IMG/VR virus record: IMGVR_UViG_3300044568_003163
Location: 1 to 64,000 of that record
Reading direction: 5' to 3' (one strand)
DNA: 64,000 nucleotides
The notes beneath the pieces are model-generated. The model saw only the letters and a list, made by a program, of their open reading frames with translations. It made no database searches and had not been told where the DNA came from. Below are positions 27,895-63,877 of the stretch, piece after piece; within the stretch, counting starts at the first letter, position 1, and each line of letters begins with the position of its first letter. The position numbers and the translations under genes are program-made.

Positions 27895-30854
<2,960 letters not shown>

Positions 30855-30855
<1 letters not shown>

Positions 30856-31902: not shown

Positions 31903-32394
31903 TTATTTATCTTCGGAAAGATAAATCTTGCTGTACCAATCGAGTTTTAATTTTTCAATGTTACCATATTTGATTCCACATTCGTCAAAGATGTGAAGAT
32001 GTCCTTGTTCTCGGTAATCTTCTATCCAATAAACATATTTGAATCCCGAATTAACTAAGATTTTTGTACACATCTTACATGGAGAAAGAGTTAAGAGGAT
32101 GATGTAATTCTTTGGATCGAATTCTCGGAACTTAGCAATCATATTAACTTCGGCATGAATGAATCCGCTTTCACCTGGAATTAGGGAATCCTCTTCAGTT
32201 CCTGTTACTTCATTTATTGGTGCACCTTTGTAGGAGCCATTATAGCCAAAAGAAGCTATTTTTGTAAAGTTTTTGTGCAATGCCATACATGCAACTTTTT
32301 TAGTTGATGCATTAGATAATGTAGCTATTTGCTGAATCATACCAGCAAAGGTATCAATTTTAAAGTCTATTCTTTCTTGTGTCATTATTTCCAA
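31903..32394 (-). CDS. dCMP deaminase
   Basis: FGYNG, IHAEVNMI, TLSPCKMCTKIL zinc-deaminase motifs. Confidence 0.9.
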   Translation of the reverse strand: MEIMTQERIDFKIDTFAGMIQQIATLSNASTKKVACMALHKNFTKIASFGYNGSYKGAPINEVTGTEEDSLIPGESGFIHAEVNMIAKFREFDPKNYIILLTLSPCKMCTKILVNSGFKYVYWIEDYREQGHLHIFDECGIKYGNIEKLKLDWYSKIYLSEDK

Positions 32395-32978
32395 TCTGAA
32401 TTTACGAGTCGAGTCTTAATACTAATTCCTTTTATTTCTTTGCCTAAAGCATCGGCAATCTTAATGTTTTCTCTATCATCGTCATAGAAAATAAAATCTC
32501 TAAAACCTATTTTAATAAGTTCCATAAAAGCTTGTTTCTTTCTATCGGCAATTGAACCATCAAATCCATTGTTAGGATCAGAAACTGCAAAGATATATTT
32601 CGGATTGACGTCTACTCCATGATGAGATAGGAATTGATAAATTAAATCTTTGTCGTCTCTAGCAGTAATGATACCTACACGCCTTCCTCTTTGCATTGTT
32701 TTCTTAAGTACATTGAAAACTCGTTCTATTAACTTACCGGCTTTTAAGATTTCTAAATTTTTAAAATCGGAAAAATCCATTTCATGATGAGCGTGCTTTT
32801 CAAATTCATTGAATTCTGCAGGTGACAAGGTAAAAGTTTCACCGGTTTGACTATCATTAACTTTGATTTGTGAATTGGTAATTACCAATGTATCATCAAC
32901 GTCAAATATAGTAATCGCTTCGAATTTTTCTTTACGAGTCGGATCTACAAAATCCTGATATTTTAAAAATTTATTCAT
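32385..32978 (-). CDS. HAD-superfamily hydrolase
   Basis: TIFDVDDTLV (motif I), IITAR (motif II), FYDDDRENI (motif IV). Confidence 0.75.
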   Translation of the reverse strand: MNKFLKYQDFVDPTRKEKFEAITIFDVDDTLVITNSQIKVNDSQTGETFTLSPAEFNEFEKHAHHEMDFSDFKNLEILKAGKLIERVFNVLKKTMQRGRRVGIITARDDKDLIYQFLSHHGVDVNPKYIFAVSDPNNGFDGSIADRKKQAFMELIKIGFRDFIFYDDDRENIKIADALGKEIKGISIKTRLVNSDWK

Positions 32979-32997
32979 AAGTGTTCATTTAGTTATA

Positions 32998-33058
32998 AGA
33001 CAAATATAACAAAAAAGCTCAACATAATGAAATATTGAGCTTAAAAGTTATTAACAAT
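32998..33058 (-). promoter_or_regulatory. Early promoter cassette 1 (TGTTAATAA box, hairpin, TATATTTG -7 box)
   Basis: Minus strand: TGTTAATAA (33056-33048), 39 nt including the AAGCTCAATAT/ATGTTGAGCTT stem, then TATATTTG (33008-33001), matching the Bacteroidota TAnnTTTG consensus. Confidence 0.75.
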
Positions 33059-33065
33059 TTATTAT

Positions 33066-33599
33066 TTAGTAATCGTTTTCGAAATCAGCTTCGGTCATGT
33101 TGTCATTAACCCATTTTTCTAATTTCTTAGCATCTTTAGTAAGACAAGCAACATGTTGGAAAGATGAATATTCATCACCTTCTTCCCATACTGCAACATC
33201 CACGTTTATATCTTTAATGTTGTAGATATAACCTGATAAATTAGAACCACCAAAAGGAGCTTCTCCACCAATACCTTTAAGTTCTTTAATGTTAAGATCC
33301 TTTTCTTCTACTCTGTGAGCTAATCCATAATATAAAGCTACTACGAATCGATAATCATCGTCTTCTGACATTGCATAAGTAACCGAATTGATATTTCCTT
33401 TCAATTGTTTAGCGATAGTTTCGAAGTTAGTTTTCATCTTAGCCAGCATATCATCATCTACCTCACCAGTTTCTTGTTGCATTTTAATCTGTGATGCTAA
33501 AGTAGTCTTAGTTTCAAAAGGGAATCCTGTATTATAATCGTATTTTTCGTTAATAAAATTCTCATTAACGAATTCTTGAAATGTTTGTAAATTTTTCAT
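33066..33599 (-). CDS. Putative internal head protein with capsid-targeting N-terminus
   Basis: MKNLQTFQEFVNENFINE resembles T4 CTS MKTYQEFIAE. Confidence 0.65.
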   Translation of the reverse strand: MKNLQTFQEFVNENFINEKYDYNTGFPFETKTTLASQIKMQQETGEVDDDMLAKMKTNFETIAKQLKGNINSVTYAMSEDDDYRFVVALYYGLAHRVEEKDLNIKELKGIGGEAPFGGSNLSGYIYNIKDINVDVAVWEEGDEYSSFQHVACLTKDAKKLEKWVNDNMTEADFENDY

Positions 33600-33611
33600 T
33601 TGTTTATTTGT

Positions 33612-34115
33612 TTAATATCTGTCGTCTTCTTCCCATTCATCATCGCTTCCATAATCATCGTCATCATCATATTCTTCTTCTTGGTACCATGATTGGTTAG
33701 GGTCGTTGTCAGGTTGTTCTGTAAAATCGTGACGATCTGCGTTAAAACGTCTTGGATCTTCTACTAAAGCAGGAAAAAGCACTTTACCACCTTTTACTCT
33801 AGTTTTTGCATGACCAAAAGCTAAATCAATACCTACGTTTCTTAATTCTTTACCAGGTTTTTTATCAGATTCGGTATAACCATTCATTTGGGCTAATAAC
33901 TCATAATAGTCTTTACCTCCAAATACTCCGTAACCTTCGTAACTATTTTCTTCGTATCTAGTACCTTTATCATCAAACATGTAAACGGTAATAGTATTTT
34001 GTCTTTCTGAACCAATTTGTCTTCCAGAATCTTGGGTCATCCATGAAAATTGACCTTCATTTAAAGGTTTAGAATTTTCATTAACAAACTCGCTGAAGGT
34101 TTTTAAATTTTTCAT
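33612..34115 (-). CDS. Putative internal head protein with capsid-targeting N-terminus, acidic tail
   Basis: MKNLKTFSEFVNENSKPLNE then GQFSWMTQD domain. Confidence 0.65.
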   Translation of the reverse strand: MKNLKTFSEFVNENSKPLNEGQFSWMTQDSGRQIGSERQNTITVYMFDDKGTRYEENSYEGYGVFGGKDYYELLAQMNGYTESDKKPGKELRNVGIDLAFGHAKTRVKGGKVLFPALVEDPRRFNADRHDFTEQPDNDPNQSWYQEEEYDDDDDYGSDDEWEEDDRY

Positions 34116-34116
34116 A

Positions 34117-34509
34117 TTATTTACCTAATCCTGAAGTTATTTTACCAACTGCAGCACCCCAATCGTCACCTTTAACGTCTTTAGAAATACCAGCAATTAC
34201 TTTGTCAGCAATTTTTTGATCGTATTTATCTCCGTGAGCTTTTTTCAAAAGCGTTTCTGCGTATTCTTTAAAGTCTTTTTCGTTTTTAATGTCAGCTTCA
34301 TTTACTTTACCTTCATTAACTATCGAAATACTTTTTATGTAATCGAAAAATTCCGCAGATTGCTCTTCATTTAATTCGATAGGTGAAGTAACACCAAATT
34401 GTTTAAGTTTGTTTTCGTATAGTTCATTGAACTTATGTGCTTGGTCTTCTTTAGTTTTTGCAACTTTTTGAAGTTTCTGCTCATTAACGAATTCTGAAAA
34501 TTTTTGCAT
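34117..34509 (-). CDS. Putative internal head protein
   Basis: MQKFSEFVNE N-terminus and internal IVNE/KVNE sites. Confidence 0.6.
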   Translation of the reverse strand: MQKFSEFVNEQKLQKVAKTKEDQAHKFNELYENKLKQFGVTSPIELNEEQSAEFFDYIKSISIVNEGKVNEADIKNEKDFKEYAETLLKKAHGDKYDQKIADKVIAGISKDVKGDDWGAAVGKITSGLGK

Positions 34510-34528
34510 TGTTTTATGTTTGTTTATT

Positions 34529-35071
34529 TTATCCGAAATATTCGTTTTCGAAGTATAACAACTCGAAGTTGTTTTCTGGGTTTATTAATTGTAGTGCATT
34601 TAAGAATCCTGCATACTCAGCAGTAGAAGATGTATTTTGCTTAACATAGTCTTGTAAGAATACGAAAGTAGCCATATCATTTAATCCAAAAATAGTTTTA
34701 GAATTTTCAGAATATGATTGAAGTAAACCATATTCCATGTCGTAAGCTTTTACGATGATGTCAGCCAAATTGTCGAAATTCATATCAGTCGTAACTGTAG
34801 GAATTGTAGGTTTAACATCCCAATCGGTCATATATTTTTGTAGACCTTGAGCATGAATTAGTTCATCTGTAGCTTCATTGTCAAAGAAAACAGCAGCTTT
34901 CTTATATTCCATGTTGTGGCACCAGTTAGCAGCACTACGATAGAAATAATGAGCAGTATATTCATCACCTATTCGTTGATTGATAAGTTTAACAACTTCA
35001 CTCCTAAGAGTATTAGGCTTTTTAACGATAGTTGGATCTACCGATTTAATTGATTCGTTTATGATATTCAT
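34529..35071 (-). CDS. Ferritin-like protein
   Basis: LINQRIGDEYTAHYFY, FFDNEATDELIHA (ExxH), AYDMEY, DMATFVFLQDYV four-helix ferritin pattern. Confidence 0.85.
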   Translation of the reverse strand: MNIINESIKSVDPTIVKKPNTLRSEVVKLINQRIGDEYTAHYFYRSAANWCHNMEYKKAAVFFDNEATDELIHAQGLQKYMTDWDVKPTIPTVTTDMNFDNLADIIVKAYDMEYGLLQSYSENSKTIFGLNDMATFVFLQDYVKQNTSSTAEYAGFLNALQLINPENNFELLYFENEYFG

Positions 35072-35104
35072 ATAATAGTTTTAGTTCTTTTATATATCCA
35101 ACAA

Positions 35105-35665
35105 TTACATGTTGGCGTCTAGAACTTTTTTGAATGATTTAGCATCAGTAACTTCTTCTCCGTGCAATTCAATAGTTTCTCTATCCAAATTGATGTAGAT
35201 TTCTGAACCTTGATATTTCATATCTAAGATAATAGTGCTGTAGTTTTTTCCAATAGCTGTACCACCACTAATTCTTTTGCCTGCCTTTTCTGCCCATGTA
35301 GCAGCCTTTTTAACTAATGCAGTTGCATAGGAACCTTTACGTTTAGCAAATTCCATGATATTAGAAGGTACAGATGCAGCTTCATTAATTACAGATTCTT
35401 CTACTTTAAAAGTTTTGTTTCCTACTTTAACGGTTTTACCTATCAGATCATCAACACCATAAGGTTTTCCTAATTTGTCTTCGAAAGTTTGATCGTCTGA
35501 CCAATCATCAGGAGTTTGTAAAAGTTTTGCAATCACATCGGCTTTAGAAGACGATTCAGTTCTACCCCAGTTGTCGATAACCTCAGAGTAATAAACTATT
35601 TCGATTGCTCCTTCATTAACTGAAGATTCGTTAATGAATTCGTTGAATGTTTGTAAGTTTTTCAT
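35105..35665 (-). CDS. Putative internal head protein, two domains separated by an xNE site
   Basis: MKNLQTFNEFINESSVNE N-terminus; internal VEESVINE. Confidence 0.65.
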   Translation of the reverse strand: MKNLQTFNEFINESSVNEGAIEIVYYSEVIDNWGRTESSSKADVIAKLLQTPDDWSDDQTFEDKLGKPYGVDDLIGKTVKVGNKTFKVEESVINEAASVPSNIMEFAKRKGSYATALVKKAATWAEKAGKRISGGTAIGKNYSTIILDMKYQGSEIYINLDRETIELHGEEVTDAKSFKKVLDANM

Positions 35666-36054
35666 TATTGATCGATGAATTCTCCATTTAGGAATCTAAG
35701 TAGAATTTTATCAGTGGGTTGTACATTTAAGTTTCCGTTGATAAAAATCTCATAAGAATCATCAGCATATTTGCCGATGCCATAAAGCTCATTGGCTTTA
35801 GAGAATTTTTTATTTATATATTCATATGAGAACTTAATAATTCGCTGAGTTCTGACGTTATAAAATCCTAGAGTTCGGATATGTTCTCGGATTTCATTTT
35901 CATCGGCATTAAGAACCGATTGTGGACTAGGCCATTTGTCAAAAAATGAGTAAATTACCTTTCTAACATTTTTGTTGCCTGTTTGATTTAACATAATGCA
36001 ACCAATAAGCATTTTCCAGGGATCGTGTTGAAATTCTTGTTGAATAATTGCCAT
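35665..36054 (-). CDS. MBD4-like HhH-GPD DNA glycosylase
   Basis: DPWKMLIGCIMLNQT, LGFYNVR, HhH LYGIGKYADDSYEIF, and PTDK Asp at the MBD4 catalytic position. Confidence 0.85.
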   Translation of the reverse strand: MAIIQQEFQHDPWKMLIGCIMLNQTGNKNVRKVIYSFFDKWPSPQSVLNADENEIREHIRTLGFYNVRTQRIIKFSYEYINKKFSKANELYGIGKYADDSYEIFINGNLNVQPTDKILLRFLNGEFIDQ

Positions 36055-36061
36055 ATCTATT

Positions 36062-36700
36062 TTATGCTGATTTTTTTAATTTGATTTTCTTTTCAGGTAC
36101 CGGATTAGGTACATATTGAGAAACTGCTGAATTTACAAACTCCGAAGTCCACCATTCAGGTTGATTATTTAATTTGTTCCAGGAGACATTCATGTACGTC
36201 GTCTTGAACGCATAGTATTTTTTATAAGATATTACAGCATCACTAGATTGATAACAGATTGGCATCGCAGTGGCAAAAGGAGTAAGGCCTTTTGATATAA
36301 TGTTTGGTGGATTTAATTTCATCCAATCAATAATTAATTTAACCGAGTGTGGATTGTTTTTCCATCGATTAAGAAATTCTTGACAAAGTTCTTCTGTGCA
36401 TTCAATTAGCCAATTGAAATTTTCTTTAGATTCTCGAGTCCATATAGTGCATGGATGATTAACGTGACTGATTGCATATGGATGATCTGTGCCATCTGGA
36501 TGCTTTCTAGGCCAGCCTTTAAATATTTTACTAACTGCATCTTGATTTTCTGCAATTTCTTTCTTTTTGGAAATTCCTAACGTATGATAGTATGCAGCTG
36601 CTAACATTTGTGTGTGTTCGATTATCATTTTTGAAATGTGTTTATCGCAATGCATCTGTGCCGCAATTCTAGGATTTTCATCCAATACAAATATGTTCAT
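36062..36700 (-). CDS. Pyrimidine-dimer DNA glycosylase family protein
   Basis: MNIFVLD...HCDKHISKMIIEHTQML...HVNHPCTIWTRES...NFNWL. Start moved to ATG 36700, just downstream of a promoter cassette. Confidence 0.8.
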   Translation of the reverse strand: MNIFVLDENPRIAAQMHCDKHISKMIIEHTQMLAAAYYHTLGISKKKEIAENQDAVSKIFKGWPRKHPDGTDHPYAISHVNHPCTIWTRESKENFNWLIECTEELCQEFLNRWKNNPHSVKLIIDWMKLNPPNIISKGLTPFATAMPICYQSSDAVISYKKYYAFKTTYMNVSWNKLNNQPEWWTSEFVNSAVSQYVPNPVPEKKIKLKKSA

Positions 36701-36719
36701 TGTAGTTAATTTATTTAAA

Positions 36720-36777
36720 GTAAAAATAATCAAATTAATTGACAAGAAAAAATAAAGTGAGTAGAAGTTATTAACAA
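36720..36777 (-). promoter_or_regulatory. Early promoter cassette 2
   Basis: TGTTAATAA (36776-36768), 39 nt, TTGAT-TATTTTTAC. Confidence 0.65.
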
Positions 36778-36800
36778 AAAAGGAACTCAATAGAGTTCCT
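36776..36800 (-). terminator. Intrinsic terminator
   Basis: AGGAACTC-tatt-GAGTTCCT plus TTTTT running into cassette 2. Confidence 0.8.
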
Positions 36801-36829
36801 TAATGTGTGCTTCGATTTGTGTTTGTTAT

Positions 36830-37198
36830 TTAGCTATTTAGCTGTTGGTATTCTCCGGTTGTATCATTTACTTTAGCCAATGAATCAGCATAAAATTTTT
36901 GATATAATTTATCGAATCTTCTATCTATCTCAGATTTGAGATTGTCGATATTATTTTCTGTCGCTAAAGTATATTCTTCGATTCGTCTTCCTCGTTCATC
37001 GATATTAGATATTAAGCTTTCTTCAACTTCATCAATTTTACGTTGAGTGTCGTCGTGTAAGTGGTGCAAATCTAAAATTTGCTTTTCGTGAGTTATGTCG
37101 TTTTTTTGTGCCTTACGTATTCCTCTAACCATCCATATTTGCAGAATGACCAAAAGAGTTGCTAGTACGCTCAACACCGATATTAAAATTGGTTCCAT
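36830..37198 (-). CDS. Membrane-anchored coiled-coil protein
   Basis: N-terminal hydrophobic helix (ILISVLSVLATLLVILQIWMV) followed by heptad-rich sequence. Confidence 0.65.
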   Translation of the reverse strand: MEPILISVLSVLATLLVILQIWMVRGIRKAQKNDITHEKQILDLHHLHDDTQRKIDEVEESLISNIDERGRRIEEYTLATENNIDNLKSEIDRRFDKLYQKFYADSLAKVNDTTGEYQQLNS

Positions 37199-37233
37199 GT
37201 GTTTGTGTTTTATTTTTAAATCGAAGCACCAAT

Positions 37234-38379
37234 TTATTTTTTATTCATTTCAAAATCGATCATTTGTTTGATGGTTTCGTGTAATGATATTGTAATTCCT
37301 TTCCATTCTGGATAATCAGTTTTAAATTTAGTCAAATCTGAAATATACCAAATATGGTCACCAATTCGATTGTCTTCTAGAACTGTGAAGTCGTTCCAAT
37401 CTTTATGTTCTGGATTTATTTCTCTTAAGATAGAATTTGCCGAATCGATTGCTTCTAGAATCGAAGTTGAATTTTCTCTACCACCACCTGCATTATAGAC
37501 TGCACCAGGTATAGGGTTGTTATGATATTCTAAGAACATACTTACTAAGTCATCGGAATGGATATTATCTCTAACTTGTTTTCCTTTATAACCAAAGATG
37601 TTGTAATGTTTGTTGTTGACAATACACTTAATCAAATAAGCAAGAAATCCATGAAGTTCTGCACCTTGATGATTTGGTCCGGTTAAACAACCACCTCGAA
37701 ATACAACCGTATTCATACCAAAATATCTGCCATATTCTTGAACCATAATATCAGCAGCTACTTTAGAAGCACCAAAGATTGAATGTTTTGTATGGTCAAT
37801 CGACATAGTTTCGTCTACTTCTATTTGACGAGCAGATAGATTCGAAAGAGCTTCATAACGAGTTTCTTGTTCAACGATGTTTAATCGATTAGGAGTATCA
37901 CCATAAACTTTATTAGTTGATGTGAATATGAATGTAGCAGTTGGACAATATAAACGAGTAAGTTCTAACAGGTTCATTGTACCTATTGCATTTACTGAGA
38001 AGTCAGTCAAAGGTTCTTTTGCTGCCCAATCATGTGAAGGTTGTGCTGCAGTATGTACGATCATTTGAATATCATAAACTTCATGAGATTTGCCGAATAT
38101 TGTAAGTTCGCTATCTTCTAAAGTAAGGCCTTTGAAAATTGTTTCTAATGTTGCATAATCTCGAATATCGATAGACAATGGATTAAAGTTTGTTCCATAA
38201 TCTAATTTCATTTTATTTTCTGATTCTTTCGTAGAAGCATCTTCACCAAAGAAATAAGCTCGCATATCATTATCGATACCAACAACATAATAACCTTCAT
38301 TAATAAGACGTTTAACAGTTTGAGAACCTATCAAACCTGAAGATCCTGTAACAATTGCAGTTTTAACTTTATTTTGCAT
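37234..38379 (-). CDS. NAD-dependent NDP-sugar epimerase/dehydratase (CDP-tyvelose 2-epimerase-like extended SDR)
   Basis: VTGSSGLIG, HTAAQPSHD, FTSTNKVYGD, SIFGASKVAAD (catalytic Tyr position is Phe), FRGGCLTGPNHQGAELHGFL, GYKGKQVRDNIH, RIGDHIWYISD. Confidence 0.85.
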   Translation of the reverse strand: MQNKVKTAIVTGSSGLIGSQTVKRLINEGYYVVGIDNDMRAYFFGEDASTKESENKMKLDYGTNFNPLSIDIRDYATLETIFKGLTLEDSELTIFGKSHEVYDIQMIVHTAAQPSHDWAAKEPLTDFSVNAIGTMNLLELTRLYCPTATFIFTSTNKVYGDTPNRLNIVEQETRYEALSNLSARQIEVDETMSIDHTKHSIFGASKVAADIMVQEYGRYFGMNTVVFRGGCLTGPNHQGAELHGFLAYLIKCIVNNKHYNIFGYKGKQVRDNIHSDDLVSMFLEYHNNPIPGAVYNAGGGRENSTSILEAIDSANSILREINPEHKDWNDFTVLEDNRIGDHIWYISDLTKFKTDYPEWKGITISLHETIKQMIDFEMNKK

Positions 38380-38941
38380 TTTTTATAATTGAGTTTTTAA
38401 TTAAGAGTTTTTCGATTTCTACTATTGATTGTTCAATAGATTTTACAGATGAATCAATTTCGATAAATCGATTTTTCCATTTACCAGAATCCGAATGATT
38501 TTTGTAATAGTCATAATACCAATCGAACGAATCTTTTTGTTTAATAAAGTCGTTTTGAGAATAGATGATTCGATCTTTTGGTTTTCGTTCTACGTATTTT
38601 TCGTATGTAGTTGAAAGATAAATTATGGCAAAATTATTATCAAGGAGTAAATCACTTAATGAATCATCTTCTTTGATTAGAGATTTTCTTTCAAAGAATT
38701 TTGAGTAAACTAATTCAGAAAGAAAAGAACGATCTAAGATGAAAGTTTCTTCAGGAAATGCAGAGTACATCATATTAGCCATCACATGAATTCCGTGATA
38801 GAATTCATGTAAGTTTTCAATACATTCAGGCATTTTGTCTTTTACTGACATTTGACGGAATCCGTATTTTTTAGAAAGTATTTCTGCAATCGAAGATTTT
38901 CCTGTTCGAGAAAGTCCTTCAAGTATAATTAGTTTTGCCAT
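38369..38941 (-). CDS. dNMP (thymidylate-kinase-like) kinase
   Basis: IILEGLSRTGKSS P-loop and ILDRSFLSELVYS motif. Confidence 0.8.
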   Translation of the reverse strand: MAKLIILEGLSRTGKSSIAEILSKKYGFRQMSVKDKMPECIENLHEFYHGIHVMANMMYSAFPEETFILDRSFLSELVYSKFFERKSLIKEDDSLSDLLLDNNFAIIYLSTTYEKYVERKPKDRIIYSQNDFIKQKDSFDWYYDYYKNHSDSGKWKNRFIEIDSSVKSIEQSIVEIEKLLIKNSIIKNAK

Positions 38942-38963
38942 AATTGTTATATGATGAAATCGA

Positions 38964-40253
38964 TTATTTGGTTAAGCAAGTGCGAATATCATTTACAATT
39001 CTATCACATGCAGACTCATATGATTCGTGGTCATATCCTACTTTGTGACATAATTCTCGCATTTGAGTTTCGCCGATAGTGCCAATCGTATGTAATGCAG
39101 TTCTTAATTGATATGCAACATCTTTTACGTCGGGTTTGTGAGTATTAACAGAATCAATTTTCGTGAAGTAAGGATATTCAGCATGACCAGCTTTTATCAT
39201 TTTGTGCAGGTAGTTATTTACTCGAGGAAATACTAAAATGTTTTTTGCCATCATAGCTTCGCAATGAGTTACACCACCATGAACTTCAGTAACAAATAAA
39301 TTACAAGCAATATGGGTTTTGTTGATAAACCTTAAATAATCTTCTCGAGTAAATTTTTCGTTATTTGGCATTACTTCGACGTGACCTTTTGATAAATCAT
39401 TAATCAATTGTAATTGTTCATCAGTTACTTTACGAGTAGGATTTAACATTACAGCTCTGAAAGGTTTGTCGGTGATAGTAGATAAAATTCCAATTGCTTC
39501 GGCAAATGAATCGTAATTAGTGTAACGATTTGCAGTATCTGAAATTCGATTACCAAAGTAAATTGTAGGAATTTCAAATTTTTCATCGTTATGGTATTTT
39601 GCAATTTCTGCATAATGAGCACCTACACCCCATACTGACTGAGGAGCAAGTATTTCTCGAGTTTTAAATAGAATATCATAAGCTTCCATTGCTTCTACTC
39701 TACCAGCTTCACATTGAAATGCAGCAATATCAGATGCAATAAAAGATTCCATTTGTCTTTCGTAATAACGAATTTTCTGCGGAACTTTATTTGCAATAGG
39801 AGAATCTAAGAAATAATTTGTAGAAATGATTTTCACTTCTTTGTTTCCAATAGTTTCAAATGCAACTCGCCAATTTTTTGTTAATGTGTTTTCGTCATTA
39901 ATCATTACATCGACATGAGGAAATCTTACAAGATTTGTTTGATGGTAATCGAAGTTGAAATTGTAACGAGAGGTCACAGGAGAAATAGGAATAATGTCTT
40001 CGTAAATTTGAATTGATGAATGATATTTCTCATCAAATAATTCGTAAATGTCGATCACATCATCGCAATGACCTGCAGGTGGTAATTTTACAATGAAATG
40101 GAATTCGTTAGGATTTTGTTCTAATATGGTTGAAATTATACCAACCGCAATATTAGTACATGCATCGTTTCTTAATAACCATTGAGGATAACCATTTCGA
40201 TTAGTGAAATTAGAAACTTGAATTGCATAAAAGATTGTTGTTTTTTTATTCAT
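38964..40253 (-). CDS. GT-B fold glycosyltransferase (GT4 / T4 alpha-gt-like)
   Basis: IYFGNRIS, REDYLRFI, TEVHGGVTHCEAM (GT4-like E...E motif). Start moved to ATG 40253. Confidence 0.65.
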   Translation of the reverse strand: MNKKTTIFYAIQVSNFTNRNGYPQWLLRNDACTNIAVGIISTILEQNPNEFHFIVKLPPAGHCDDVIDIYELFDEKYHSSIQIYEDIIPISPVTSRYNFNFDYHQTNLVRFPHVDVMINDENTLTKNWRVAFETIGNKEVKIISTNYFLDSPIANKVPQKIRYYERQMESFIASDIAAFQCEAGRVEAMEAYDILFKTREILAPQSVWGVGAHYAEIAKYHNDEKFEIPTIYFGNRISDTANRYTNYDSFAEAIGILSTITDKPFRAVMLNPTRKVTDEQLQLINDLSKGHVEVMPNNEKFTREDYLRFINKTHIACNLFVTEVHGGVTHCEAMMAKNILVFPRVNNYLHKMIKAGHAEYPYFTKIDSVNTHKPDVKDVAYQLRTALHTIGTIGETQMRELCHKVGYDHESYESACDRIVNDIRTCLTK

Positions 40254-40257
40254 TAAA

Positions 40258-40983
40258 TTACATTTTAGAATAGTTAATAGTAGAGTGTGGTAGGTTTTGT
40301 ATGTAATCAAAATCCTTTTTGAAAACGTGAGCAGAAACTACAGACGAAGAAAATTTACCTGGTTCAACTTCTAGTTTTTCTGCTAATTCGCAAGTAAATC
40401 GACCCCATAAGTACATATCAAGCTTAAGGACTTGTGCCATATTTTGAGATCGCATATGAACATGAACATTTAGCTTTTCATCTCGGATAAAGAAAGTAGC
40501 AGAATCGGTACATGGAAATTCTAAAGATTCGTTTTTATCTAAAAGATTAAGGTCATCTTTATCGAGAATCATAATGACTGCTCTTCGAGTATCAGGTTTA
40601 TCTCGCAATTCCTTTTCGATTGTAGGTAATTGTGATAAAATACGAGGACCATAGAAGGTATTGAAGTTTTCTGGAAGTTGGTCAGACTTTGGCTTTTCCA
40701 TAAACTTAGTGACGTTTGGATATTTGTCGATAATTTCGGTTGAGTCTGTGCAACCGTTCATCATCCAACGATAAAAGGTATCAGCATAATCATAGTCTAA
40801 TTTACCAATCAACTCGTTCGTAAATTGATAACTGGTTAAATCGAGTACATCATAACTCAATCCTGTAATTTCATGTACTTCACCAATGCGAGAAGTAGTT
40901 TGAAATTCAGGATTGTCTATAATATGCTGAGAAGTTTGTAAGAAAGCTTCTTCAAAAGTTTCAAATGTAGAATATTTGTGCAT
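40258..40983 (-). CDS. Thymidylate-synthase-fold enzyme with dCMP-type specificity residue (dCMP hydroxymethylase-like)
   Basis: YGPRI, PDTRRAVI, FPCT (catalytic Cys), HMRSQNMAQVLKLD with Asp at the E. coli TS Asn177-equivalent position, SAHVF. Confidence 0.8.
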   Translation of the reverse strand: MHKYSTFETFEEAFLQTSQHIIDNPEFQTTSRIGEVHEITGLSYDVLDLTSYQFTNELIGKLDYDYADTFYRWMMNGCTDSTEIIDKYPNVTKFMEKPKSDQLPENFNTFYGPRILSQLPTIEKELRDKPDTRRAVIMILDKDDLNLLDKNESLEFPCTDSATFFIRDEKLNVHVHMRSQNMAQVLKLDMYLWGRFTCELAEKLEVEPGKFSSSVVSAHVFKKDFDYIQNLPHSTINYSKM

Positions 40984-41015
40984 AAAAAATAGTTTTAAAT
41001 CTTATGCAAAATTTG

Positions 41016-41369
41016 CTATTTTGTATCAAGTAATTTTACTTTAGCAACACAAAGTTTTTCTTTGATTTTATCAGTTTTGATTTTACCAAATCTAGAGAAG
41101 ACCATTCGGGTCATATTAGGATTGATTCTATCCTTAATGATATTATCTAGTTCCTCACCTTTAATATTTGAATAAGTTCTCAATTCAAATCGATCTTCTT
41201 CAATGTGAGTTAACATAATTGAACCGTTCATAAAGAAAAGCCTTTTTGCAGTTTCGAAATCTTGCTTCAAAATGAAGTCGTTCATAAACTCGTTTTTCAT
41301 AGTCTTATTTAGTGTTAAGACTACCAATGATTCGTTAATGAACTCATCGTATTTTTTAAATGTGCTCAT
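41016..41369 (-). CDS. Putative internal head protein
   Basis: MSTFKKYDEFINES N-terminus. Confidence 0.55.
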   Translation of the reverse strand: MSTFKKYDEFINESLVVLTLNKTMKNEFMNDFILKQDFETAKRLFFMNGSIMLTHIEEDRFELRTYSNIKGEELDNIIKDRINPNMTRMVFSRFGKIKTDKIKEKLCVAKVKLLDTK

Positions 41370-41854
41370 TACTTATTTAATTTTACCTCTATGATATTTT
41401 TAGGTCCTTTAGAAATAGTGGCCTTAGGGAATTCATGTTTAATATATTTAGAATAGAGATTAAGTCTAGCTATGTTTGTAGTTTCTCCTTTCTTTTTTGC
41501 TGGTGTAAATACGAGAATATCTACTTCGGGATGTGTACTTAAGTCTTTCTTAATTACATCTACGACGGTTGCCATTACTTTAAATAGTTCTCCCTTATTT
41601 GTTACAATATCATCTCTTTCAATGTCTGGATCTTCATCATCCGGAACATAGAATCTCACAGATAAAACGTTGTTTGCACCTTCATAATCGTCTATGTCGT
41701 CGTATTGTAGTTCTACCGTATATGGATAGCTTGGTGTTTCAAATCCATATATTCTTGCATTGCCATAATCACCATAAAAATCAGGATGATATGCCTTTGA
41801 ACTGGAATCTCCTATTTCGTTTAAGAATTCGTCGTATGATGGTAAATTTTTCAC
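41369..41854 (-). CDS. Putative internal head protein (GTG start)
   Basis: MKNLPSYDEFLNE N-terminus; TNKGELFKVMATVVDVI domain. Confidence 0.6.
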   Translation of the reverse strand: MKNLPSYDEFLNEIGDSSSKAYHPDFYGDYGNARIYGFETPSYPYTVELQYDDIDDYEGANNVLSVRFYVPDDEDPDIERDDIVTNKGELFKVMATVVDVIKKDLSTHPEVDILVFTPAKKKGETTNIARLNLYSKYIKHEFPKATISKGPKNIIEVKLNK

Positions 41855-42216
41855 TAGTCTTGTTTTGGTTTTTCGCCTTTACCTTTTAACCAATCGGCAA
41901 CATCAGAATCCGTAGTTTCGTATCCTTTAGTTTTTCTAATGAAAGCATTTAAACGAGCATAACCCCATGCAGTATATGCTGCAGGACCTCTACCAATTTT
42001 TTGAATGTTAGGATTAACAGCACCCCAATTAGTTTCAGCTGCACCATAACCTCTTTTAAAGAGCATAGTTAATGCATCTTCGATTTGAGCAGGAGATCCA
42101 CCAATAGCTTTTTTAGTTTTTGGATCGTTTGCAAGTTCCTTTATTCTATCATCTACTTTGCTATCTTCATTTAATGCAAAATCGACGAATTCGTCGTAAG
42201 TTATTAGATTTTTCAC
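41854..42216 (-). CDS. Putative internal head protein (GTG start)
   Basis: MKNLITYDEFVDFALNE N-terminus; RGYGAA...AWGYARLNAFI motif. Confidence 0.6.
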   Translation of the reverse strand: MKNLITYDEFVDFALNEDSKVDDRIKELANDPKTKKAIGGSPAQIEDALTMLFKRGYGAAETNWGAVNPNIQKIGRGPAAYTAWGYARLNAFIRKTKGYETTDSDVADWLKGKGEKPKQD

Positions 42217-42224
42217 TTATTGAA

Positions 42225-43034
42225 TTATTTTGGTGTCCAAATCTTTTGAACTTTTTTATTTATATATTCAATGAGTTCGCTGAAATTAGGATCTAACGCC
42301 TGAGAGTCGAATGATTCTTTATTTGTAGAAAACGAAATCTTACCGTAAACTTCTCGAGTATCTAAATATTGAGATATTCCAGCTTTTCGCAAAGAATCTG
42401 AAAATATAACATACTCATATCTACCAGAATTATCGTCATATATAATATTAGGTAAAACTTCGTTCTTAACAAAGTATGTACAATGTACTACTGGAACTTG
42501 GATTAGTCCTTTATATTTTTGATATAATAATGTAGAGTACATATCATCATTTTCGAAATATCCATTGGTATCTATTGATGAATGGAAATTTGAGTACATA
42601 GAGTTAGAATCTACTGAATGCAATAAAGGTGCTACTACTGGTAAATTAGTGGCCATTAGAGAATTGATAGTATGAGGTTTGATTATATTATCACAATCTG
42701 CGATAAAATAATCTGCCTTTTCGCTCATGGCAAATTGAATAGAGTCTTGTCTAATTGCTCCTAATATTTTAAATCGATGAGTATTCCAATCGTGATTTTC
42801 TACTAACTTTAGGCTTTCATCTATCGATGAATCATCAAATACCATTTTCCATTTCCATTTCCACTTATTGTACCAATCAAATAAAACATTAGCAGTATCG
42901 TCGTTATTGTCGTTTGTTCGAATATAAAATACCGAGTCCCATCCAAGAGCAGTCTGAGCTAACATACTATCTAAATACAATGGTAGTATATGGGCTTTTG
43001 ATTTTGCGATAATAGGAATTACTAATCTACTCAT
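42225..43034 (-). CDS. GT-A glycosyltransferase resembling the N-terminal domain of procollagen galactosyltransferase COLGALT1
   Basis: IIAKSKAHILPLYL, IRTNDNNDDTANVLFDW, IRQDSI, ADYFIADCDNII (DxD), LPVVAPLL, YSNFH, GYF, VPVVHCTYFV occur in the same order as recalled COLGALT1 motifs. Confidence 0.75.
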   Translation of the reverse strand: MSRLVIPIIAKSKAHILPLYLDSMLAQTALGWDSVFYIRTNDNNDDTANVLFDWYNKWKWKWKMVFDDSSIDESLKLVENHDWNTHRFKILGAIRQDSIQFAMSEKADYFIADCDNIIKPHTINSLMATNLPVVAPLLHSVDSNSMYSNFHSSIDTNGYFENDDMYSTLLYQKYKGLIQVPVVHCTYFVKNEVLPNIIYDDNSGRYEYVIFSDSLRKAGISQYLDTREVYGKISFSTNKESFDSQALDPNFSELIEYINKKVQKIWTPK

Positions 43035-43450
43035 ATATGTTCTAGAATTTCAAGGTGAGCTTTAATCATTCTAGGTCTAGCCATTTCAAACGGCATAAAA
43101 CCAGCCCAATCAACTTCTGCAGCTTGTAATTGAGACTTAGGTATGATTTCGGATTGTAAACCTATTTGGTCTAATGATTTAATAGGTACAATATAATAAG
43201 TTAACTTCTTCCAGGGTTTTCCTGTTTTAGTTTTGATATAAAATAGCTCCATTTCTGGACCAATCAAATTTCGAGGAACATCAATACCAATTTCCTCTTT
43301 AGTTTCTCTGATTGCTGCTTCTATATTAGTTTCACCGGCATCAACATGACCTTTAGGGATCGAATAGGTTCCATACCATCTTCCATTAGTTGGATGAACT
43401 AATAAAATTTGGTCTTTATAGATTATTGCTAATCCTGACGAATGTTCCAT
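43031..43450 (-). CDS. Nudix hydrolase
   Basis: GHVDAGETNIEAAIRETKEEIG Nudix box. Confidence 0.92.
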   Translation of the reverse strand: MEHSSGLAIIYKDQILLVHPTNGRWYGTYSIPKGHVDAGETNIEAAIRETKEEIGIDVPRNLIGPEMELFYIKTKTGKPWKKLTYYIVPIKSLDQIGLQSEIIPKSQLQAAEVDWAGFMPFEMARPRMIKAHLEILEHI

Positions 43451-63535: not shown

Positions 63536-63592
63536 ATCGAAGGTATATTAGGCCATACCAATAACCAGGACCTTTTCCCTAGGGAAATGTCG

Positions 63593-63675
63593 TGACCAAA
63601 GAGGGACTCGAACCCTCACGCTCAAAGAGCACCAGCTTCTTAGACTGGCGTGTCTACCAATTCCACCACTCGGCC
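63593..63675 (-). tRNA. tRNA-Leu(AAG), type II, no encoded CCA
   Basis: GGCCGAG/TTTGGTC-A acceptor, Leu-type D arm GTGGAATTGGTAGACAC, CCAGT-CTAAGAA-GCTGG anticodon arm, GCTC-TTT-GAGC variable arm, GAGGG-TTCGAGT-CCCTC T arm. Confidence 0.85.
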
Positions 63676-63679
63676 GTAA

Positions 63680-63800
63680 TGAGCAATCCTATGGAATTAC
63701 TGCAGTTTATCCAAAGGTCGTATATAGCTTGCAGACTAAGATTCTGCTGGATTTTCACCTTCATAAAGCTGGATATCAACGACCCTTATCGCGATTCTCA
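63680..63800 (-). ncRNA. Candidate structured RNA between the two tRNAs
   Basis: Nested complementary segments: TGAGAATC/GATTGCTCA, AAGGGTCGT/ACGACCTTT, AGCT/AGCT, GCAGA/TCTGC. Confidence 0.35.
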
Positions 63801-63803
63801 TTG

Positions 63804-63877
63804 TACCCGAGATGGGACTCGAACCCACACTGTACAGGGTTTAAGTCTGATGCCTCTTCCAATTGGGCTACCCGGGC
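63804..63877 (-). tRNA. tRNA-Leu(TAA) with short variable loop and imperfect anticodon stem
   Basis: GCCCGGG/CTCGGGT-A acceptor, TCAGA-CTTAAAC-CCTGT anticodon arm, 5-nt variable loop, GTGGG-TTCGAGT-CCCAT T arm. Confidence 0.75.

Follow-up and report, generated by a model that had tools for sequence, protein, structure and literature searches.

Why should a set of otherwise unrelated proteins in a phage genome all begin with nearly the same short run of residues? The question is raised by a 64,000-nucleotide stretch of DNA (the window), the first 64 kb of the linear IMG/VR phage record IMGVR_UViG_3300044568_003163, in which a preliminary description had picked out seven to nine proteins between positions 32385 and 42216 that share an N-terminal leader resembling the capsid-targeting sequence (CTS) of phage T4. 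The whole record is 294,034 bp, with a guanine-plus-cytosine (GC) content of 0.33 and a CheckV completeness estimate of 91%, and a crude gene call places 425 of its 442 genes on the minus strand. All nine of the N-termini quoted were located as described, on the minus strand, two of them behind GTG start codons (Table 1). We consider it probable that the leader is a greatly expanded form of the T4-type capsid-targeting and cleavage leader, and that some of its cargo is made as small polyproteins.

A leader carried by about sixty genes

The leader consensus, M-K-N-[LI]-x-T-[FY]-x-E-F-[VIL]-N-E, spans 13 residues, and individual leaders are 10-17 residues long. A regular expression for the leader core, run on the six-frame translation of the whole record, found 34 sites, all on the coding strand and 33 of them at or directly after a start codon. 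These sites seeded a 13-position hidden Markov model (HMM), with which 4,005 candidate N-termini were scanned at a threshold of E<=0.01, and 50 of the ~442 called genes matched. At least 10 more divergent leaders were recognized by inspection among nominally untagged proteins that have an early [VILMF]NE; the family thus has about 60 members, or roughly one gene in seven, and the original count of seven to nine was too low by about six-fold. Five shuffles of the candidate N-termini gave no match at E<=0.01, an HMM seeded with nothing but the six window leaders still recovered 42 genes, 35 of which lie outside the window, and 46 of the 48 matches on full-length proteins end within residues 1-20, the other two being traced to start-codon assignment. 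Chance is therefore excluded as the source of the leader matches. At the DNA level, a strict pattern for the leader matched 33 times on the coding strand and never on the other.

The span originally assigned to the family does contain tagged genes (i.e., genes carrying the leader), but not as a single block: they form one cluster at 33.0-35.7 kb and another at 41.0-42.2 kb, with untagged genes of nucleotide and sugar metabolism in between. Over the whole genome, tagged genes are spread over at least eight clusters distant from the head module. The seven canonical window leaders score between E 3e-7 and 1e-3. Two further proteins had been described as weaker members. The first, a HAD-type phosphatase, keeps the first ten residues of the leader, ends it in FVDP, and has no NE cut motif, a form shared by more than 90 close orthologues; orthologues at 54-58% identity have a canonical leader ending in NE directly before the catalytic DVDDT motif, and still others are leaderless, starting a few residues before DVDDT. 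The second, a ferritin-like protein, is unmatched by the leader HMM and has only IINE at residues 3-6, which looks like a truncated leader retaining nothing but the cut motif; its orthologues in three related contigs (54% identity) have a fuller, 16-residue leader, ITINE/A (here and below the slash marks the predicted cut), that aligns on the IINE of the window protein. Because orthologues of each carry fuller or canonical leaders, both proteins are, on this comparison, related to the family, the HAD protein without a cut site and the ferritin with little beyond one.

Table 1. Positions of leader-bearing genes and of putative expression signals. Numbers up to 64000 lie in the window; larger numbers are positions in the whole record. 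E-values are those of the leader HMM unless a Pfam family is named; nt, nucleotides.
Feature	Position (strand)	Length (residues)	Description
HAD-type phosphatase	32385..32978 (-)	197	Pfam DUF2608/HAD, PHROG 415; E 0.0075
Tagged protein	33066..33599 (-)	177	Leader residues 1-13 (nt 33561-33599), ends VNE, E 3.6e-7; second site FINE, ending at residue 18
Tagged protein	33612..34115 (-)	167	Leader residues 1-13, E 3.3e-7; second site LNE, ending at residue 20; conserved body from G21
Tagged protein	34117..34509 (-)	130	Short leader, residues 1-10, ends VNE, E 1.8e-4; four further [VILMF]NE sites
Ferritin-like protein	34529..35071 (-)	180	Starts M-N-I-I-N-E; Pfam Ferritin E 1.5e-20
Tagged two-module protein	35105..35665 (-)	186	Leader residues 1-13, VNE again at 18, E 1.1e-6; module 1 residues 19-~92; joint VINE residues 92-95 (nt 35381-35392); module 2 residues 96-186
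Tagged protein	41016..41369 (-)	117	Leader residues 1-13, ends INE, E 6.9e-6
Tagged protein	41369..41854 (-)	161	GTG start; leader residues 1-13, ends LNE, E 8e-8
Tagged protein	41854..42216 (-)	120	GTG start; variant leader with 4-residue insertion; LNE ends at residue 17; E 1.2e-3
Divergent leaders (examples)	110610, 111008, 112090, 166685, 167610, 173799, 181513, 239516
Tagged gene in gp22 position	245136
Six tagged genes adjoining portal	250804-255766
Intergenic cassette	32979..33060 (-)		Closes the gene run from the ferritin gene to the 33066 gene and begins the HAD gene; putative promoter-terminator of the HAD gene's own
Further window cassettes	Upstream of 36700, 45366, 49454, 50537, 57463, 63411
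Late-like motif GATATATAA	35090-35098		27 nt before ferritin ATG; heads ferritin, 34509, 34115, 33599
Late-like motif AATATATAA	42260-42268		52 nt before 42216 start; heads 42216-41854-41369
Other window copies of late-like motif	Before 31400, 25426, 18824, 17627

The conserved Asn is encoded by AAT 22 times and by AAC 19 times, TTT and TTC each occur at both Phe positions, and nine different codons specify the V, I, or L of the aliphatic position; F/Y and V/I/L exchanges are also found among the leaders, and the DNA upstream of the tagged genes is not conserved. Because synonymous codons vary freely at conserved positions, selection on the leader, as judged from the codons, acts at the protein level and not on DNA. 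When the first 16 residues were removed, 44 of the 50 bodies (67-470 residues in length) were singletons in an all-versus-all BLASTP comparison at 1e-3, and the rest of each protein is thus unrelated, as had been described. Bodies of one kind also gain and lose the leader, which the HAD family carries in canonical or degenerate form or not at all. From the variation of its codons, the unconserved upstream DNA, and the singleton bodies, the leader is a portable protein-level element on unrelated proteins, as originally suggested. We also observed that C-ending codons (TTC, TAC, AAC) are far commoner in leaders than in the genome overall; the Phe before the aliphatic residue, for example, is TTC in 27 cases and TTT in 17, whereas the genomic TTC share is 0.31.

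The capsid protein has 548 relatives in IMG/VR, and tags are found in the head-module flanks of most of those with at least 60% capsid-protein identity. In GenBank, the nearest record by the same protein is the uncultured 462-kb phage LR756500.1 (56% identity), followed by the Lak megaphages (36%) and huge uncultured phages of 636-735 kb (33-35%); the nearest cultured relatives are the Tenacibaculum jumbo phages pT24 and PTm1, at 32-34%. The strict DNA pattern matched 16, 20, 14, and 11 times in four related genomes, in each on one strand only, and nine times, on both strands, in a fifth, against 0-1 matches in controls. A variant leader, with N, L, or Y at position P2, heads about 20 proteins of LR756500.1 (24% GC). 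Of 20 pattern matches sampled in LR756502.1 (642 kb; 35% capsid-protein identity), 14 lie at the start of an open reading frame (ORF) or directly after an in-frame ATG. The leader persists over a capsid-protein identity range of 35-94% and despite a difference in GC content, 24% versus 33% in two measured genomes. It showed no enrichment in PTm1, using both the HMM and the DNA pattern, nor in pT24 or Lak-A2, using the DNA pattern only. PTm1 and pT24 share with our phage a protease-scaffold fusion gene, which in PTm1 is annotated "prohead core scaffolding protein and protease" and lies just before the capsid gene, but differ from it in showing no leader enrichment. A megablast of the region against GenBank phages gave no match, and the near-core lysyl-tRNA ligase of the published "moraphage" lineage is absent from this genome.

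The T4 leader, the probable protease site, and the joints between modules

The internal proteins of T4 reach the core of the prohead by means of a CTS of 10-20 residues (PMC5694885, PMC3012670), which is the sole conserved part of these diverse proteins and is sufficient for packaging foreign ones (PMC3012670, PMC5694885). The motif recognized by proteases of the gp21 family is a short x-x-E, with cleavage following the Glu, and a substrate usually has several such sites (PMC5694885). When the leader HMM, built only from the window phage, was run over 2,963 candidate N-termini of the T4 genome (NC_000866), ipIII and ipII ranked first and second, each at E 0.019, with the next match at E 0.45; the predicted likeness to the T4 signal was thus borne out. 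The leader at 167837 ends TYEEFIAEA, and T4 has TYQEFIAEA, one position different. Common descent of the two leaders is likely on these comparisons. T4 gene 61.1 (ORF from 19130, minus strand), which encodes a 54-residue hypothetical protein, also has a CTS-like N-terminus, M-K-T-F-K-E-F-I-K-E, although its profile score is low (E 3.4).

The leader is, like the CTS of T4 IPII and IPIII, a short sequence at the extreme N-terminus with the pattern M-K-(x)-T-[YF]-x-E-F-[IVL]-x-E (PMC3012670, PMC5694885); it too ends in hydrophobic-x-Glu, the probable recognition motif of the phage's own protease, and is portable among unrelated small proteins in a phage with a gp23-type capsid and an S77 protease. 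The differences from T4 are also clear. Some 50-60 carriers occur here as opposed to the two (ipII and ipIII) that this profile finds in T4; P2 is almost always Asn, whereas it is Ala in T4; many leaders have a second site 4-9 residues on, many carriers consist of several modules with internal joints, recognizable enzymes are found among them, and the protease is fused to the scaffold.

The head genes are of T4 type. On the minus strand their order is portal, protease-scaffold fusion (637 residues), a tagged gene of 206 residues, and major capsid protein. The last belongs to Pfam Gp23 (PF07068; E 2.4e-36, over the cut-off), and the protease to Peptidase_S77 (PF03420; E 4e-14, 49.9 bits against a cut-off of 27). 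The T4 gp21 structure 5jbl aligns with the protease domain at E 7.8e-6, and the alignment includes the motifs GELDHP and ISSRA, which we take to hold the catalytic His and Ser of gp21. The protease domain makes up the first ~164 residues, and the remainder of the protein is long and repetitive and lies in the position of a scaffold gene; an S77 protease is thus fused to the scaffold in one 637-residue protein. No other protein of the proteome has more than three [VILMF]NE sites, and this one has ten. The site at ~164, immediately past the end of the protease region, is shared by nearly every full-length relative listed, those near 375 and 421 recur down to ~46% identity, and those near 560 and 600 recur more widely. 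The [VIL]NE that ends the leader is therefore the motif commonest in the protease-scaffold, at conserved positions, and is probably the site of the phage's own prohead protease, at which cleavage is predicted. The capsid protein itself has an N-terminus of the form x-[LF]-[IL]-N-E in all relatives examined.

Second and internal sites had been noted in several of the window proteins, and they are both real and enriched. Beyond residue 14, tagged proteins contain another 38 sites, about four times the 8.9 +/- 2.8 of shuffled sequences, and in nine leaders a second site follows the first by 4-9 residues. Untagged proteins contain 147 sites versus 97 +/- 10 in shuffles, part of this excess being the scaffold and the divergent leaders. 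In the longer tagged proteins the predicted fragments are domain-sized, at ~60-150 residues.

Two homologue alignments place these sites exactly at module boundaries. For the protein at 33612-34115 (909 homologues), conservation starts exactly at [LIV]NE/GQFSW, behind leaders that vary in length and sequence, some canonical, some an unrelated 20 residues, and some of 70-100 residues that are themselves tag-initiated; AlphaFold-DB relatives from cells begin to align at their residue 2, opposite query residue 21, the first after LNE. For the protein at 35105-35665 (242 homologues), module 2 (~90 residues) is 80-96% identical in many phages and always directly follows [VIL][NSDT]E/AA, whether it stands alone behind a bare leader (in proteins of 104-109 residues), behind other modules, or before further modules that follow another x-N-E; module 1 (residues 19-92) is a separate, untagged ORF of 77 residues in three related contigs. 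In addition, a tagged protein of 337 residues has a site at residue 150, and its nucleotidyltransferase-like C-terminal domain begins ~11 residues further on. Because the sites match module boundaries in alignments of homologues, and because the modules so joined are also found separately, the earlier idea of mini-polyproteins is supported, and the best reading of the alignments is that part of the cargo would be made in this form. The C-terminal tail of the 33612-34115 protein (33612-33680) is strongly acidic and rich in D, E, and Y; this composition is conserved in homologues, and model confidence there is low.

Few bodies are recognizable. The exceptions are the ferritin-like protein, the HAD phosphatase, and the nucleotidyltransferase-like module, whose cytidylyltransferase-like segment resembles phosphopantetheine adenylyltransferase in PDB (E 0.004). 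Among the 29 tagged proteins scanned, 26 have no Pfam family over the cut-off, and PHROG likewise gave almost nothing. In the window, neither the 33066-33599 nor the 41016-41369 protein has a Pfam or PHROG family, ESM Atlas gave no usable match for the former, and the 41369-41854 protein has a weak match to DUF6934 that falls below the Pfam cut-off. AlphaFold models were obtained for the 33612-34115 protein, with a predicted local distance difference test (pLDDT) score of 72, and for the 35105-35665 protein (pLDDT 61, with only module 2 at 83-91); Foldseek found no PDB match for either (E > 0.1), and matches in AlphaFold DB clusters were to uncharacterized relatives only. The proposal that the tagged proteins are anti-defence or takeover effectors is neither supported nor excluded by these searches.

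Giant phages of the phiKZ type offer a second comparison. The heads of phiKZ, 201phi2-1, and SPN3US contain dozens of protein species, many of which are cut after Glu in x-x-E by a gp21-related protease (PMC5694885), commonly at several sites per substrate (PMC5694885). However, their propeptides are mostly longer than 100 residues, without common sequence, and their motif is A/S/G-x-E, whereas the leaders here are 10-20 residues long, conserved, and end in [VIL]NE; furthermore, the head genes here are of T4/Lak rather than phiKZ type. Assignment to the phiKZ class of ejection proteins was consequently rejected.

Expression signals and neighbouring genes

About 35 intergenic cassettes on the coding strand of the genome consist of TTGTTAATAACTT, a hairpin with a T-run, and then TTGTTATATTTGT, and lie ~75-85 nt before starts; in full form the last box reads TTGTTATATTTGT(C/A)T(T/A)ATAA and ends ~20-25 nt before the start codon. 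In layout they resemble a terminator and a host-type promoter in one, comparable in principle with the promoter-early-stem-loop elements of T4; the last box fits the Bacteroidota -7 consensus, and the cassettes lack Shine-Dalgarno sequences. Together, these boxes and the missing Shine-Dalgarno sequences suggest a host among the Bacteroidota, probably in the Flavobacteriia. A different motif, [GA]ATATATA[AC], has 40 copies on the coding strand versus three on the other, of which 24 are 12-61 nt before a start, and it precedes the portal gene, the protease-scaffold gene, and the operon of a collagen-like fibre, making it a candidate late promoter. By a crude operon assignment, the motif stands at the head of units that contain 26 of the 50 tagged genes but only 57 of the 376 untagged ones (Fisher p 3e-8), which is consistent with co-expression of tagged genes with head genes. 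CATATAA[TC], with 40 intergenic copies on the coding strand versus two on the other, precedes a different set of genes. We rejected TATAAATA as a T4-style late promoter because several copies lie within the early-type cassette; [GA]ATATATA[AC] is the better candidate.

In the window, the TTG start listed for the ORF at 36062-36790 overlaps a promoter cassette at ~36773, and the true start is probably the ATG at 36700; the resulting protein of 212 residues has no Pfam family. Beside and between the tagged clusters (37234-43450) lie genes for an NAD-dependent sugar epimerase/dehydratase, a thymidylate-kinase-like protein, a 448-residue protein of no known family, a thymidylate-synthase-like protein that is possibly a pyrimidine hydroxymethylase, an unknown protein of 269 residues, and a NUDIX hydrolase; the untagged genes here may form a DNA base-modification module. 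The 986-residue protein at 27895-30855 has long runs of collagen-like G-x-T/G-P-T repeats, is probably a fibre, and belongs to the unit headed by the late-like motif upstream of 31400. At 63592-63877 the coding strand carries a pair of tRNA-Leu genes, with anticodons AAG and TAA, and intergenic DNA at 64-71 kb of the record resembles further tRNA genes.

Possible action of the leader

From these results we infer targeting, cleavage, retention in the head, injection, and a role as cargo. Proteins bearing the leader would be drawn into the scaffolding core as the prohead assembles, and there the scaffold-fused, T4-type (S77) prohead protease would cut after the Glu of [VIL]-N-E. One cut specificity would thereby remove the leader, chop the scaffold, and split multi-module cargo into its domain-sized modules; the mature pieces would remain in the head with the DNA and probably be delivered to the host at infection. 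The principle is that of T4, and what is new is the scale, the uniform x-N-E joints, the polyprotein architecture, the fusion of protease and scaffold, and the spread in an abundant uncultured clade. A literature search found no paper linking a capsid-targeting sequence with huge, jumbo, or megaphages.

Several observations weigh against this account. The phage is uncultured and the argument is built from sequence, and because a tblastn search with two tagged bodies found no match, and thus no homologue, among GenBank phages, no cultured phage with virion proteomics could be used. The match to T4 is modest (E 0.019 with a 13-residue profile), and common descent is to that extent unproven. The leader HMM has no match in the phage's own scaffold or its repeats, even at lenient thresholds, and the capsid protein lacks x-N-E at the position aligned with the T4 cleavage site; the residues there are LYE, and it is in distant relatives alone that they read LNE. 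For about half of the tagged genes the signal heading the unit is the abundant host-type "early" cassette, or there is no recognized motif, the operon assignment is crude, and the "late" label comes only from the genes that [GA]ATATATA[AC] precedes. Some 60 cargo species, ordinary-looking enzymes (the HAD phosphatase, the ferritin, and the nucleotidyltransferase-like protein) included, far exceed what T4 packages by this route. A predicted complex of the protease-scaffold with the 117-residue tagged protein scored 0.00, which we list here even though it is no evidence either way.

We entertain, with some doubt, an extension of the same account in which the leader is a free-standing copy of the scaffold repeat unit: the cargo would mimic the repeat, co-assemble with the core, and be freed by the very cuts that dismantle it. 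The protease-scaffold of LR756502.1 (699 residues, directly upstream of the capsid gene) has 11 tandem 14-residue repeats ending in Y-S-E-Y-[IL]-A-E, close to the core of the T4 CTS, and residues 267-406 of the window phage scaffold contain [YF]-x-x-x-[VL]-x-E units with the same 14-residue period. An HMM of the LR756502.1 repeats fails to retrieve the leaders of the window phage, and it ranks T4 ipIII and ipII first, but only at E 0.13. Because the cross-searches between leader and repeats gave no or weak matches, this extension is a lead and not a result.

Three other explanations were weighed against packaging of lasting cargo. The leader might be only a cleavable propeptide or prohead-core signal, with most tagged proteins being expendable core that is chopped and expelled before DNA packaging, like T4 gp22, gp67, and gp68, and thus neither lasting cargo nor injected effectors. 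The gene in the position of gp22 and the six adjoining the portal are indeed tagged, many tagged proteins have multiple sites, and the scaffold itself is the richest x-N-E protein. Nevertheless, we think this unlikely, as the fragments predicted are not short peptides but conserved, folded modules of domain size (e.g., module 2), the bodies include enzymes, and the eight or more outlying clusters are far from the head module.

Less likely again is that the leader addresses its proteins to some other destination or fate, such as a compartment built by the phage, a chaperone, or degradation at a set time by another protease. The tie between leader and capsid is one of sequence alone, the share of tagged genes behind early-type cassettes or no recognized motif would fit such a fate, and the HAD family keeps the leader without a cut site; yet the leader has no long hydrophobic stretch, at least by eye, is most like those of T4 IPII and IPIII, and shares its C-terminal motif with the protease-scaffold, although no other candidate receptor was looked for.

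We give very little credence to the third, that the shared N-terminus serves expression, as a translation-initiation or mRNA element or a recombination hotspot carried over with gene starts, and that x-N-E is incidental. Reshuffling of gene starts at promoter-stem-loop elements is known in T4-like genomes, and the lack of Shine-Dalgarno sequences in host-type cassettes, the commonness of A-rich second and third codons (MKN), and the over-use of C-ending codons in the leader would all fit. On the other side, synonymous codons are free while the residues themselves are conserved apart from F/Y and V/I/L swaps, the upstream DNA is not conserved between tagged genes, the three residues that close the leader form the motif in which the scaffold and the module joints, remote from start codons, are enriched, and the leader survives the wide divergence in capsid protein and GC content described above.

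To our knowledge, the proteins that giant phages package and inject have been catalogued in only a few cultured models, where mass spectrometry had to identify them one at a time. Should the leader act as it does in T4, sequence alone could list the cargo of a large uncultured clade: about 60 proteins here, or roughly 10% of coding capacity, in a clade with 548 capsid relatives and genomes of up to 642 kb. Such cargo is almost wholly without known function and includes very conserved small modules, and would then be a focused list of candidates for early-acting host-takeover or counter-defence proteins. We know of no receptor identified in the core for the T4 CTS, and the finding suggests a testable mechanism for that signal. 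The leader and its protease site may also be a second, divergent pair for packaging foreign proteins in phage heads. Finally, should the leader prove to mimic the scaffold repeat, a whole abundant clade of aquatic huge phages would have a sequence-readable "injectome" of ~20-60 proteins, made partly as polyproteins.

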